Shown here: piece by piece, positions 45,112 through 51,552 of the stretch
Position numbering within the stretch: position 1 is the stretch's first letter
How the letters are laid out: each line of letters starts with the position of its first letter
Origin: Phaeosaccion multiseriatum
Taxonomy: Eukaryota > Protista > Ochrophyta, other classes
Length of the DNA: 64,000 bases
Assembly (NCBI GenBank): GCA_965112735.1
Contig: OZ218951.1
Coordinates: 3,410,001 to 3,474,000, forward strand
Direction: 5' to 3'
The notes under the pieces: generated by a model
What the model saw: the letters and a program-made list of their open reading frames with translations, nothing else
The model's database searches: none
What the model was told of the DNA's origin: nothing
Made by a program: the position numbers and the translations under genes

Positions 45112-45385
45112 TCACTCCTCCACCTTGATGTTGAGACTGGCCATGACGTTGTGTTCCTCCCCATCAAAGGCATCGTACCCTTTGAAAGGTAAGTCCTTGT
45201 CCCCCTGCAACAGCGCAGTAATGTCATCCGTAATGACCTGCTTGGGCACGAGGCCGATGATGGCCGTCTTGACATCCCCCTCCTTGGTGATCATGGCGAG
45301 GTGTGGAATGCCATCCACACGGAACGCCTCCACGAGGTCCGCGTTGGCAGCGGAGTCTCCGTCGATCACCACGAAATTCACCTGT

Positions 45386-45435
<50 letters not shown>

Positions 45436-46435
45436 TGTGTGTATGTGTGTGTGCGTGCGTGTATGTGTATGTGTGTTCGTGTGCATGTTTTATGTGTGTG
45501 TATGTGTGCGTGTGTGGGCAGGGAGGGGAGGGGAGAGGAGGGGAGAGGTATTGGCGGTCCGGGAAAGAGTAGCCAGGTACGAAAAAAAGTGCCTCATATC
45601 TCTCTCCAGAACAAAATAAAGTGGAGGGGAGCGCGGGCCAATGCGGGCGGGGGCGAGTGGGTGGGTTGGGTTGGGTTGGGTTGGGTGACACCGATGTCCT
45701 GGATGTTTGGCGGCTCTCTCTCTGTCCGGTCCGCACTGCTAGGGCGTACTGTATACTAGCCGTACGCACCTTTCCTTTGTACTGCTTCTCAATGTCCTTC
45801 ATGGTGGGCGCCATGGCCTTACAATTGCCACACCAGTCGGCATAGAAGTCTACCACCGTAGGCTTGCCGTTCGTCAGAGCCGTAACCAAGGGGGTAGAGG
45901 TGGTCTCCATGGCCCGCAGCATGCCCAGCGGGTTGGCGTTAGCTGGGGCGGCCCCCGAGTGGGTGAAGAAGAAGAGCATACAGGTGGATAGGAAGGAGGT
46001 GAGGGCCACGGCGATGCTATTGCGCTTCTCGACGCGCTGCTCTGCTGCAAAAGCTTCTCTCCGCGCGGCTGCAGCGCCACTGTCCTCCACCGTCTTGCCC
46101 ATCTGCTGGGCTATTCTCTGCTGCAGAGTGAGCCCATCGCCGTCACCACCGGACGACGCTCCATCTGCTTGGGCCGCATCCTCTTCTCCCCCGTCTGCCT
46201 CAGCATCAGCATCATCCGCGGCTCCACCCAACCTAGTGGGAAGCCAAGCGCTTCTTTGTGACACCCTTGCCTCCCCCGCCCTTGGAGTGCATGCTCGGAA
46301 AGGCTCATTTCCGACACCACAAGCGCTTAATGTCCTCGACAGATGAGGAGCACTTCCCCCTGTCGGGGTGAAGGCTCGGCCCCGCCGGACGCAGGTGGCT
46401 ACCAAAACCCCTATGATTGCGGTGCTCCCCTTCAT
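45112..46435 (-). CDS. HCF164: Plastid thylakoid thioredoxin-like protein HCF164/TxlA, 2 exons
   Basis: Exons 46435-45770 and 45381-45112. Signal peptide MKGSTAIIGVLVATCVRRGRA|FTP has an ASAFAP-type cleavage site. A TM helix (IAVALTSFLSTCMLFFF) precedes ALTNGKPTVVDFYADWCGNCKAMAP...FRVDGIPHLA...IGLVPK. Confidence 0.88.
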
Positions 46436-46665
46436 CCTGCCTCTCCTTTCCACCTGACGAGACCTCCTGTCCATGCAGCGAATAGTCCTTCGTTTTGTGG
46501 GCAGGAGGGGAGCAAAGACAGGGCAAAAGTGGGAGGGGAGGAGAGGGGGAAATTAGGATGGAATGAGTGCGCGGAAACCCTTCCTTCCCCTCACTATATA
46601 TTTTCCACGGTCTTGGGTCTTCATGTGACGTTGAGACGAGGGCTTGGCGCCTCTCCTCTACAGGG

Positions 46666-48360
46666 ATGCCTTGCTGGAGACATCGCAACTGCTTGCATGT
46701 GAAGGTGGGGCTTCACAGGTGCAGAGTGCTCAAGGTGAGGAGAGAAAGCGATTATGATTTTCAATATTGGATCCGCCTTACCCCTCCCTCCCCCCCCCCC
46801 CAACTCTCAGCTCATCGTGTATATTGAGGGGAAGCAGCTCGACGCCTTTAATGAGGTGTGTGGGTGTGCGCGGGATGCTCGACTACGGTGTGAGGGGGGC
46901 GAAAAGGGCGGTGGGTCTGGCTCGACGTGGCTACGGGAGAGGGAATCGCGACTCTGGAGCTGCCTCCCCCCAGCAATGGGGGTGAGATGGTCTCGGTGTC
47001 GCTTTTCCAGTGTCTCACGCATCCACCCAGGCACCTTTTACACCGCCCAGAACAAACTTCAGCTGCGGTTTTGGGCTCTCTTTTGGGTCTGAATTCGTAC
47101 GGCTGTCAGCGGTCAGACAACCGCTCGCTGGCTCCACGGGCACGGTGCTGACTTTGTTCGGTGCACTGTGCCTACTATCACTCGGTGAACATTTTATTTT
47201 ATTTTATTGGATCGTCCTCTCTCCTCCTCTCTCTGTGTGGATGTGCTTTCCCTTGCTAAACCTTCTGTGAAACCTTTGTTGTTGTCTCCGCCATCCTTTC
47301 TGTGCTGTGCAGGATGAAAGCCTCTATGACACCCTTCTGAAGGATGTTCGACGCCTGGTGAGTGAGGGAGCTACCCTGGTAGATACGCATGTTTTGTCCT
47401 GTACTCTCCTCCGTCCATCCTGGAGCCTCACTCCTCCTGCCACTCCCTTCGCTTCCCCTTCCTCCTCGCCCCCACCTCCTCTTCTCCGCCCCCCGCTTGT
47501 TCCCACCCCCCCCCCCCTCCCGCCACCCCTTTCCTGCTCTGCACCATCCTATCCCAAAATAAAAGATTGTGGAAACTGCAGACGACCCCGACCAGGACCC
47601 TGAGGCCGATGCGACCTTCAAGTCCTACAAGCAGCTGCGCAGGGACAATCAAACCGTCCGGAGCAAGAGACTCAAGCTCACCTTCCAGTTCGTCCGCACA
47701 CGTCCGGCCTTCGAGGTGCTCGAATTCAATCCCAACCCGGGGAGGATGCGCGCACAAGTAGGTGGTGCAGCAGCCGTCGTGGGCTCCATTCCCGTCTCCC
47801 CCGCCACGCTGTGTGTGTGGGCGTCTCTACTCCCCGCCGCCATCAAAGGAAGGAGCAGCAATGGCAAGGGCAAGGGCAAGCAGCAGCCCCAGACCAAGAT
47901 GGAGGATAGTGTTGTCGGTGATGATGATGATGATGATGAGGAGGAGGAGGAGGAGAGAAGCAGCGAGGCCAGCGCCTTGTTCCAGTCTCGGTACCTGGAC
48001 CAGCACTTCGGCGGGGCGGCGTGCTCACAGGGCGGTGGTGAGGGAGGAGGAGCGCTCGACCACCAACTTGGGCGCGGGGGAGGAGGGGGCGCAGACAACT
48101 TGTTTGCACGCGCAGCGGCGGCCGCGGCCAACCGCACAGAGGAGGAGGAGCTGCAACTTGCCATCGCTCTGTCGCTCTCCAGCAAGGACAATGACAACAA
48201 CAGCAACAACTACAACTACAACACCGAGGGCTCCGAGTCGTCATCGCTATCAAGAGGAGGAGGAAAGCGCAAGGCCAAACGGCCTAAGAGCGCTTCTGGT
48301 GCATCAGGGGAGGGTGAGAGTGCGGTGGAGGTCATCTCGCTGGAGGAGGACTCTCCGTAG
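46666..48360 (+). CDS. Nuclear protein with a possible SLX4IP-like N-terminal domain, a UIM, an NLS and a C-terminal SIM-like motif; snoRNA host gene, 4 exons
   Basis: Exons 46666-46734, 46811-46855, 47313-47357 and 47566-48360, all phase 0. UIM TEEEELQLAIALSLS, NLS-like KRKAKRPK, SIM-like VEVISLEED. The SLX4IP resemblance is pattern-level inference. Confidence 0.7.
46906..47194 (+). ncRNA. Intronic box H/ACA snoRNA, copy 1 (289 nt); predicted guide for the 18S site equivalent to human Psi1347 (SNORA4/ACA4) and yeast Psi1290 (snR83)
   Basis: H box AGACAA 47115-47120. Lower stem TCGCTGG/TCGGTGA. Pocket CTCCAC (47132-47137) plus ACTA (47174-47177) is complementary to conserved 18S UAGU-Psi-G-GUGGAG. 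Upper stem GGGCACGGTGC/GCACTGTGCCT (11 bp). ACA at 47189-47191 is 15 nt from the pocket apex and is followed by TTT. Confidence 0.85.
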
Positions 48361-48539
48361 TAATGCGGTGGAGTGTTGTACGTCGGTGCCAGTTGTGATG
48401 AGCTGCTTGCACATGGCAGGAGGTCGGGATGCTCTCGCAGAGCTTGGTTGTCAAAGGATAGAGCGACCCGCAGGCTTGCTCTCGGGTTGTTAATGGTCGA
48501 TTCGACTACTAGACAAGATATGATACAAGCACTCAGCGG

Positions 48540-48631
48540 ACCACCGAACAGACTCTTGTGGAACAATAACCATCCATTCCACAGAGTCTGTCTGGTGGTG
48601 GTTATGGTTCCACAAGAGTCGGTTTGGTTGT
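48540..48631. other. About 35-bp hairpin with two alternative 3' arms
   Basis: The 5' arm ACCACCGAACAGACTCTTGTGGAACAATAACCATC is complementary both to 48577-48599 and to 48597-48631. Confidence 0.7.
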
Positions 48632-48884
48632 ACATGAGGCCATCTCGCTGTAGGGAGGACTCTCCATGACCCCGAGATGGAGGAGGAGAGGAGAGGAGAG
48701 GAGGAGCAGAGGCCATCCGTGGATCAAGCATCTGACGAGGAGTGGATAGAGAGAGGAGCAGGGCACCCCTCCTCATCGAGCGACGGCTGAGGAGAGAGAG
48801 GAGCAGGCCATCCATTCATTGAGCGACGCTACACTGGGACGGACAAGACTACTGCTTTGCTGTGTGGCCTCCCTCCTCCTCCTC

Positions 48885-48915
<31 letters not shown>

Positions 48916-49197
48916 TCTGCTCTGGGGTTGTGGGAGGGAGGCCTGCGACTTAATGATGGTGAGTTGGAAGTGAGAGGAGGACCAGCCAGCCAATGCTCTG
49001 GTGACTTGCAAGTGAGAACAGGACGAACGAAGCAGCCGGGAGGGCAGGAGAGCACAGTCTTGGCCTGCAATCAAGAGGGTTTGGTTTTGTGTTTTTGGCT
49101 GGATGGATGCATGCATGGATGGGTGGATGGATGGATGGATGGATGCGTACTTTTTTCACCTCCTCTCCTCCACTCTGCGGGGGGGCGAGAAGAAGAA

Positions 49198-49486
49198 GGG
49201 CGGTGGGTCTGGCTCGACGTGGCTACGGGAGAGGGAATCGCGCCTCTGGAGCTGCCTCCCCCCAGCAATGGGGATGCGGTGGTCTCGGGGTCGCTTTTCC
49301 AGTGTCTCACGCATCCATCCAGGCACCTTTTACACCGCCCAGAGCAAACTTCAGCTGCGGTTTTGGGCTCTCTTTTGGGTCTGAGTTCGTACGGCTGTCA
49401 GCGGTCAGACAACCGCTCGCTGGCTCCACGGGCACGGTGCTGACTTTGTTCGGTGCGCTGTGCCTACTATCACTCGGTGAACATTT
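49198..49486 (+). ncRNA. Box H/ACA snoRNA, copy 2
   Basis: 9 substitutions and no indels relative to copy 1. H box 49407-49412, pocket and ACA (49481-49483) are intact. Confidence 0.85.
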
Positions 49487-49726: not shown

Positions 49727-50892
49727 CCCTCTCTAACCTCCGTACCCCTTTCCCTTTCGGTTGCAGTGTGCTGTGCGGCGCAGACATGTCGGAGCGCGAG
49801 ACGGACTGACACATTTGATGGCAGCGGATGGACACATCGGATGGCAGCGGATGGACATATCAGATGGCAGCGGATGGAACGGCGGATGGCAGCGGATGGA
49901 CACATCAGATGGCAGCGGATGGAGAGTAGTGCTCCACCGTCCAAATGTACACATGCATGTATGTATGTATGTATGTAACAAGTGGGCCAGTCACGCACGG
50001 AAGGAGAGGGACACAAATCTTTGTATCAGTGTTCTTTTCCCGGGGAGGAGGTGGGGGTAGGAGTGGGTATGAGGGGGGGGGTGTCAGGACGCGAACTTTC
50101 AAGGCACACGCAGTATGTGCATGTTCATGCATTGGCCGAGGGGAGGTGGCGAGAGTGGTAGGGAGGGGAGCTAAGCTGGAGGGAGGGAGGGAGGGAGGGA
50201 GGGAGGGAGGGACCCAATAGAGCCTATCATGCCAGCACACACCTTCGCAGAGCCGAATGGCCTGACTGACTCGATTGGGACTGTGTGTGTGTGTGCGTGC
50301 CGTCCCACTAAGAAGCGTGGATGTCGAAAGTGGTCTCTATTCTCCTTTCTTTAGTACTGTTTGTATCTTCATGAAAAAATATAGTGATTGATGGAGAGAA
50401 TGAATCAACATAACCAGCACAGTACCCGTCTGTACATGCACCTTTCACACCCTCCGTCATGGCGCCTGACTACCCTACCATATCATGCGCACGCACGCAC
50501 GCACGCACGCACCCCTCCTTTGGTTGGGCTTGCTTCCCTTCCCTTCGGAACGGTGCTTGCTTGCTCAGCCTGGTCCTCTTTGGTGCCCTGTGTTTCTCAG
50601 GCTATCGACGGCTAACCCAAAGGCAAGGAGGAGGGTCCTACCCCACCCCCCGCATCTGAGCCACCCCGACCCTGACCCTGGCCCTGACTCTGACCCTGAC
50701 CCTGGCCCTGACTCTGACCCTGACCCTGACCCTGACTCTGACCCTGACCCTGACCCTGACTCTGACCCTGACCCTGACCCTGCCTCTTCTTCCTGTCTCC
50801 CACCCCCCTCGCCCCTCAAGTCAAGAAACAGTATCAAGTCAAACAGTTCCCCTCTTTCCCCTGAACCTCCTCCTTTCGGTGATGCATCGCTC

Positions 50893-51552
50893 TCATCGGA
50901 TGGGGGCTTTTGTGTAGCTGGAGAAGCCTCCTCTGCCCCCCCCCATCCCCTCGGGAAGGTGTATTCTGTGTGGGTCCGCGCCGCCCCCCTCTCTCCCTTC
51001 GGAGACGCCGCGCCTTTGCCGAACCTTGGGCACAAACGCTTTTGCCACCGGCTGTGTGGTAGTGGGGGCCGTGATTTGGTGTTAGGACAGTGAGTTGGTG
51101 TCAGGACGGTGCGTGGGTGTCAGGACAGAGAGTGAGTAAGTCAGTGACAGGATAGGGAGTGGGTGTCAGGACAGAGAGTGAGTAAGTCAGTGACAGGATA
51201 GGGAGTGGGTGTCAGGACAGAGAGTGAGTAAGTCAGTGACAGGATAGGGAGTGGGTGTCAGGACAGAGAGTGAGTAAGTCAGTGACAGGATAGGGAGTGG
51301 GTGTCAAGACAGAGAGTGAGTATGTCAGTGACAGGATAGGGAGTGGGTGTCAGGACAGAGAGTGAGTAAGTCAGTGTCAGGACGTGCCCACCCCGGCTGC
51401 TTACCATTCCAATGCCATAGGTGAGATTGAGGTTTCTCTTCTGACTCCATTTTGTTGAGTGCACCCCTCTTCCTTCTCCCCGCCTCGCGGCGTGGGGGTC
51501 GGCAGCTTCATTTACACGTTGTTGTTGTTGCCGTTGTTGCTGCTGCTGCTGC

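Follow-up and report, generated by a model that had tools for sequence, protein, structure and literature searches.

Two direct copies of a 289-nucleotide (nt) element, here called copy A and copy B, are found in a 64,000-nt stretch of the genome of the ochrophyte alga Phaeosaccion multiseriatum (contig OZ218951.1 of assembly GCA_965112735.1, positions 3,410,001 to 3,474,000 of the forward strand; hereafter the window). Each copy probably encodes a single box H/ACA small nucleolar RNA (snoRNA) of about 289 nt on the + strand, composed of a long 5' hairpin (HP1) with its H box, an internal hairpin (HP2), a 3' hairpin (HP3) predicted to guide the pseudouridylation of U1295 in 18S ribosomal RNA (rRNA), and an ACA box (Table 1). 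The locus can be regarded as a well-supported predicted guide for one of the most conserved small-subunit (SSU) pseudouridines, in helix 34, and the two copies as a well-supported candidate pair of previously uncatalogued H/ACA snoRNA genes with an elaborated architecture for which there are precedents. The duplication, the predicted folds, the motif geometry, the match to the alga's own 18S rRNA and the copy number are shown here, while the expression of the RNA, its ends, the binding of proteins, the modification itself and the identity of the true H box are inferred. To our knowledge, the snoRNAs of ochrophytes are almost uncatalogued, and annotation based on open reading frames is blind to them.

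Table 1. Features of the candidate H/ACA snoRNA and its host gene, in positions of the window; nt numbers in brackets count from the first base of the element
Feature	Position	Strand	Remarks
Copy A, candidate H/ACA snoRNA, 289 nt	46906-47194	+	within host-gene intron; 1 of 2 genomic copies
Copy B, candidate H/ACA snoRNA, 289 nt	49198-49486	+	96.9% identity to copy A, no indels
HP1, long imperfect 5' hairpin, 143 nt (nt 1-143), 7-bp closing stem	46906-47048	+	z -3.8 (A), -1.6 (B)
H1, ANANNA box (nt 144-149), AGAACA in copy A, AGAGCA in copy B	47049-47054 (A), 49341-49346 (B)	+	predicted unpaired, P 0.96
HP2, plain 46-nt internal hairpin without pocket (nt 155-200)	47060-47105	+	z -5.0 (A), -4.6 (B)
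H2, second ANANNA box, AGACAA (nt 210-215)	47115-47120	+	predicted unpaired, P 0.85
HP3, canonical guide hairpin (nt 220-283)	47125-47188	+	z -3.0 (A), -2.3 (B)
5' guide strand GCUCCAC	47131-47137	+	predicted 7 bp with 18S GUGGAGU, one G.U
3' guide strand ACUA	47174-47177	+	predicted 4 bp with 18S UAGU, immediately 5' of U1295
ACA box (nt 284-286), immediately after HP3, then TTT	47189-47191	+	15 nt from pocket top
Putative host intron GTGTGT...CAG around copy A	46865-47312	+	inferred gene model, read from sequence
Last coding stretch of host gene	47569-48360	+	stop codon 48358-48360

The guide hairpin, its predicted target and the H box

The final 72 nt of the element have the geometry of a textbook H/ACA guide hairpin. 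In HP3 a lower stem of 7 bp and an upper stem of 11 bp are separated by a pocket with 6 nt (CUCCAC) on one side and 8 nt (ACUAUCAC) on the other. The top of this pocket falls within the 14-16 nt from the box that are usual for the class. The partition function predicts both pocket strands to be unpaired (P 0.94-0.96), and the pocket strands, the two ANANNA boxes and the ACA are all expected to be single-stranded (P 0.85-0.99). In copy A the whole-RNA fold has a z-score of -3.4, and each hairpin is more stable than its dinucleotide shuffles. These motifs had been noticed earlier in a sequence-only reading of the window, which proposed a duplicated and unusually long H/ACA RNA with three domains. 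Its closing stem, two ANANNA boxes, middle hairpin, guide hairpin and ACA-TTT end are all present, and the hairpins, boxes and pocket geometry bear out an H/ACA anatomy on the + strand. The HP1 closing stem (GGGCGGU/ACCGCCC) measures 7 bp in the minimum-energy fold instead of the 8 bp given earlier.

The ribosomal DNA (rDNA) unit of this genome was delimited with Rfam, and the guide strands were fixed by the predicted structure. HP3 then shows bipartite complementarity to UAGU-U-G-GUGGAGU at positions 1291-1303 of the alga's own 18S rRNA (4+7 bp), leaving U1295 and G1296 unpaired at the base of its upper stem. The same pairing had been predicted for the pocket CTCCAC/ACTA from the conserved 18S motif UAGU-U-G-GUGGAG, and the matching site does exist in this species. 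When 4+6 bp or more with no more than a single G.U were required and the placement was the same as in HP3, 113 of 20000 random guide pairs (0.57%) were as good at any of the 1387 rRNA uridines. Counted from the middle C of the CCG in helix 34, U1295 lies at +10, an offset equal to that between N4-acetylcytidine 1280 (ac4C1280) and pseudouridine 1290 (Psi1290) in yeast, and the sequence between CCG and target uridine is presumably identical in the two organisms. HP3 is therefore predicted to guide the equivalent of yeast Psi1290, making a pseudouridine at 18S U1295 of this alga a concrete prediction. The sequence-only reading had ascribed the site to both SNORA4 and snR83. SNORA4, which we take to target the equivalent human 18S uridine, could not be confirmed for it in the searchable literature, whereas snR83 is indeed the guide of yeast Psi1290 (PMC5699541).

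The hinge between HP1 and HP3 also contains HP2, and the result is a hairpin-hinge-hairpin-tail fold in which the ANANNA boxes of the hinge are predicted to be single-stranded. Of the two boxes, just one needs to function. Geometry favours H1 (AGARCA in the two copies) over H2 as the true H box, because it directly adjoins the closing stem of HP1 and because HP1, although devoid of an open two-sided pocket, has a loop on its 3' side only, with its top 16 nt from H1, much like a vestigial pocket. H2 lies 9 nt past HP2 and 4 nt ahead of HP3, and is less favoured because HP2 has no pocket; it may serve as an alternative H box or have arisen by coincidence.

The position of H2 also invites a shorter RNA, in which only the 3' ~135 nt (HP2, AGACAA as H box, HP3 and ACA) form the functional snoRNA while HP1 is a separate 5' leader, a processing signal or an independent small RNA of the same intron. 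Such a molecule would be canonical in size and order, with AGACAA 4 nt ahead of HP3, and it would account for an HP1 that lacks a canonical pocket and carries five of the nine substitutions between the copies in its apex. However, HP2, itself pocket-less, ends 9 nt ahead of AGACAA, while AGARCA adjoins HP1 as expected of an H box, and one ANANNA in a 19-nt hinge is plausible by chance. Moreover, the basal 96 nt of HP1 are the best-conserved part with a single change, the preserved block begins exactly at the HP1 base, and HP1 is nowhere found without the 3' half. We consider the shorter RNA unlikely, though it deserves to be kept in mind.

According to the 289-nt model, the RNA would most likely be released from the spliced intron by exonucleolytic trimming, copy A being located in a sense intron. 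Cbf5, Nop10, Nhp2 and Gar1 would then assemble into a ribonucleoprotein (RNP) on two units, each made up of a hairpin and its box (HP1 and AGARCA, HP3 and ACA). HP3 would act as the working guide, its strands GCUCCAC and ACUA clamping UAGU-U-G-GUGGAGU of the 18S rRNA. U1295 of helix 34 would thereby be positioned where the upper stem begins, 15 nt from ACA, and be isomerised to pseudouridine there. The long and pocket-less 5' hairpin HP1 would serve mainly RNP assembly and stability, and HP2 would be an inserted internal hairpin that separates the 3' hairpin from the H box, in the manner of yeast snR30.

Preservation of the two copies and choice of strand

Copies A and B are in direct orientation at a spacing of 2292 bp and differ by nine substitutions and no indels over 289 nt, just as first described. 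The flanks had been reported as diverged. This holds for the farther ones, as the upstream flank aligns no better than shuffles and the downstream flank matches solely via CT/GT low-complexity sequence, but ~15 nt upstream and ~45 nt downstream are still alignable at ~60-65% identity with several indels. The residual similarity of the near flanks indicates that the duplicated DNA segment was larger than the element and that only its 289-nt core has been preserved. The preserved block opens with the first base of the stem that closes HP1; on the 3' side, the copies first differ at ACA+4. The preserved unit is RNA-shaped, whether through gene conversion or purifying selection, two processes that are inseparable here because there are just two sequences.

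No additional copy exists in the genome according to a BLAST-type search of the 67-Mb assembly (22 contigs). Covariance models of the 5' domain (R1) and of the 3' half (R2), run separately on the 67-Mb genome, detected neither a diverged paralogue nor either half alone; R2 includes one surplus base pair, which both copies satisfy and which leaves the outcome unaffected. A short interspersed element (SINE) had been named as the alternative that dispersed copies would reveal. With two copies per 67 Mb instead of many dispersed ones, SINEs and miniature inverted-repeat transposable elements (MITEs) can be ruled out.

The nine substitutions are unevenly distributed. Five are found in the HP1 apex (nt 46-92), and the only one in the basal 96 nt of HP1, the best-conserved part of the element, changes G-C to G.U. 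One lies at an N position of the H1 box, and HP2 and the upper stem of HP3 each have a single substitution, both from U-A to U.G. In the 3' half the copies differ by three A-to-G changes, and the earlier statement that these keep the H consensus or give G-U pairs agrees with one change at the N position and two from U-A to U.G. The further claim that G-U pairs arise on the + strand only is weaker than it was made out to be: the + strand pairing holds, but the wobble argument carries little weight because the consensus fold of the - strand offers alternative G partners. The + strand is nevertheless favoured for the RNA because of the consensus fold energy (-111 kcal/mol vs -91.5 kcal/mol for the - strand), the ACA at the 3' edge of conservation and the sense orientation of copy A in its intron. 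An RNA from the - strand would have no 3' ACA and a worse consensus energy.

The duplicated unit might also be a protein-coding exon, since the first ~190 nt of both copies are spanned by an open frame. This frame has 61-62 open codons in both copies and is continuous with the upstream exon in copy A, and three of the six changed codons are synonymous. On the other hand, each of the three + frames has 61-81 open codons, an open frame of this length or more occurs in 67% of shuffles, and the exons flanking copy A join in frame across the GT-AG intron that contains the element. We reject a coding exon with near certainty, because long open frames are usual in a sequence as GC-rich as this one, Pfam gave no match to the translations and the excess of synonymous changes lacks significance.

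Several observations weigh against a functional 289-nt snoRNA. Conservation between two sequences may in part be due not to selection but to gene conversion or a rather recent duplication, and the HP1 apex is less stable in copy B (HP1 z -1.6). The 3' guide strand pairs by 4 bp only, H1 was chosen over H2 by geometry alone, and the intron location of copy B is a candidate one. The Rfam scan proposed with the sequence-only reading gave no H/ACA family match, either in the whole window at gathering thresholds or in 3.4 kb and the isolated element at E <= 10, and no other Rfam family rose above noise on the element. Two metagenome scans, one with a strict pattern and one with stems as purine/pyrimidine classes, were also without a match and provided no relatives.

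The copies could accordingly be imagined as a recently duplicated non-functional sequence, or a decaying pair of snoRNA pseudogenes, with H/ACA features and an 18S match that are fortuitous or vestigial. The existence of two sequences only, without relatives in the metagenome scans and without an Rfam match, is in line with such an origin. It would demand, however, that a core standing out against its flanks, 289 nt free of indels, substitutions that suit the structure, a canonical geometry and the match to a uridine that is modified in yeast all coincide, and we consider it very improbable.

Possible roles of the two additional hairpins

The three domains proposed earlier are confirmed in so far as the RNA is predicted to fold into three hairpins, each of them beyond the shuffles in copy A, but the two extra hairpins have neither a canonical pocket nor a target above chance level. 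All box-compatible positions, and then six alternative loops of HP1 and HP2, were compared with SSU, 5.8S and large-subunit rRNA, U2 and U6, and nothing convincing was found; U5 was undetected by the Rfam model in this genome. No pocket of HP1 or HP2 fits the region of the 18S Psi1415 equivalent either. The sole scoring alternative is an 'opened' HP1 pocket, formed by 46913-46926 with 47027-47041, which would pair 6+5 bp at SSU U655 (L012:649-661 of the alga's own 18S). U655 belongs to the variable region 4/expansion segment 6 (V4/ES6) of the 18S rRNA, a region bound by snR30/U17 in other eukaryotes. We rejected this pocket as a guide: it is 22 nt from H1 and therefore beyond the canonical spacing, it must melt a 6-bp basal helix (paired P >=0.95) at a cost of ~10 kcal/mol, and its score is at chance level after seven tests for a site in a variable region. 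A chaperone-type pairing was likewise discarded, as the best duplex of the whole RNA with the 9.9-kb rDNA scored 14, just above the median of the shuffles (13) and below their 95th percentile (15). HP1 and HP2 are best read as non-guide structural parts because they have no usable pocket and no above-chance target.

Three full units might be assumed instead, with three hairpins, the functional boxes AGARCA, AGACAA and ACA, and a protein set on each, as in the archaeal three-hairpin small RNAs (sRNAs). Every hairpin is in fact followed by an ANANNA or ACA that is predicted to be single-stranded, and all three hairpins are kept between the copies. HP1 and HP2 are, however, without pockets or targets, and the spacing between HP2 and its box is atypical. 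A structural study from 2025 moreover considered a third protomer unlikely in eukaryotes, arguing that the N-terminal extensions of eukaryotic Cbf5 would not fit it (PMC12745780). The three-unit RNA is thus highly unlikely in our estimation. Only slightly better placed, as a long shot, is the idea that the conserved base of HP1 is a working module of some kind. It could be the site of a third H/ACA protomer, which would be a eukaryotic first, or a non-modifying clamp whose 6-bp helix opens onto V4/ES6 near U655; if true, the clamp variant would represent a pseudouridine guide with an additional snR30-like chaperone arm.

Other classes of RNA were examined and rejected. A telomerase RNA is not indicated, as there is no CCCUAA-type template, and a box C/D RNA would require a UGAUGA/CUGA pair that is absent. 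A Cajal body (CAB) box was dismissed as well: copy A has a UGAG in the apex of HP1, but in copy B it is lost.

Precedents, a second locus and the genomic neighbourhood

Vertebrate H/ACA snoRNAs have ~130 nt and two hairpins. The description of the element as unusually long could not be upheld for the class as a whole, as yeast H/ACA RNAs average ~200 nt, and one- or three-hairpin forms are known in selected eukaryotes (PMC7601244). In yeast snR30, for instance, the 5' hairpin is long and has no pocket, the H box and then an internal hairpin follow, and the 3' hairpin is canonical, its pocket being 14-16 nt from ACA (PMC7601244). The architecture of snR30 and its vertebrate counterpart U17 (SNORA73) is the same as that of the element. 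However, snR30 does not guide pseudouridylation; the m1/m2 motifs of its 3' pocket bind ES6 of the 18S rRNA, while the pocket of the element fits a pseudouridine site. The HP3 pocket strands CUCCAC and ACUAUCAC do not appear to match the m1/m2 motifs, and Rfam gave no snR30/U17 match.

Yeast snR83 (guide of 18S Psi1290 and Psi1415) belongs to the same RNA class and is assigned to the same helix-34 uridine that is predicted for HP3, but the element has no Rfam match, no pocket for the Psi1415 equivalent and a three-hairpin layout. The lack of a family match and of a second pocket, together with the different layout, suggests a function shared with snR83 but no demonstrable shared ancestry. SNORA4 differs from the element likewise in that the latter has no Rfam family match. 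The archaeal three-hairpin H/ACA sRNAs share with it the three hairpins, each followed by an ANA-type box; in these, however, every hairpin is a guide with a kink-turn (K-turn) or kink-loop (K-loop), whereas only one hairpin of the element has a pocket. Judged by its sequence, the element would combine an snR83-like function at the 3' hairpin with an snR30-like build, is a member of neither, and is best placed as a putative family of its own among the H/ACA RNAs, new to the class.

A second duplicated H/ACA-like RNA is present in the same genome 2.8 Mb away (G000:C2:599528-599754 and 601687-601913, corresponding to L020:229-455 and 2388-2614). Its copies are 2159 bp apart and 95% identical. 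In their conserved core of ~190 nt, an ANANNA box (ACAUGA) is followed by a small internal hairpin and then by a long 3' hairpin, and an ACA marks the limit beyond which conservation decays. Its sequence is unrelated to the 289-nt element (neither R1 nor R2 matches it). As this second candidate also has an ANANNA followed by an internal hairpin, such elaborations may be typical of the alga. The two loci together suggest that in this lineage, as in budding yeast, H/ACA RNAs are built with an internal hairpin past the H box, and they bear on the question of whether these elaborations are ancient or have arisen repeatedly; the current view of H/ACA RNPs is left unchanged. Two 86-nt sequences with UGAUGA and CUGA are found close to the second locus (L020:818-903 and 982-1067; 91% identity, 164 bp apart) and are likely to be box C/D snoRNAs.

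Copy A appears to lie in a sense-strand GT-AG intron of a protein gene, starting 41 nt past the donor and ending 118 nt ahead of the acceptor. The neighbouring exons end at 46864 and occupy 47313-47361 (with a GTGAGG donor), and a single reading frame is kept across the intron. The host protein was scanned as separate exon-bearing frames. Its C-terminal stretch has a weak ubiquitin-interacting motif (UIM) match (EEEELQLAIALSLS; 17.9 bits, below the cut-off), and its C-terminus, VEVISLEEDSP, resembles a SUMO-interaction motif with an acidic tail. Copy B starts ~840 nt past the host stop codon, with a candidate donor (GTGAGT) at 48959 and pyrimidine-rich candidate acceptors at ~49602 and ~49766.

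Between the host stop codon and copy B, a near-perfect inverted repeat of ~92 nt is found at 48540-48633, single-copy in the genome and including a short TGTGGAA...TTCCACA module. As a single-copy sequence it is not a dispersed hairpin mini-transposon. It has a sub-threshold match, of the microRNA-precursor type, to the Rfam family mir-1267 (E 0.0065; 28.5 bits vs a gathering score of 70). A divergent thioredoxin-domain gene (PF00085, E 5e-12) occupies 45224-46474 on the - strand, immediately upstream of the host gene, and a long GT/CA microsatellite probably resides inside one of its introns. Downstream of copy B, tandem arrays are located at 49792-49923 and 51043-51410, with 23-nt units (GGATGGCAGCGGATGGACACATC-like) and 46-nt units.

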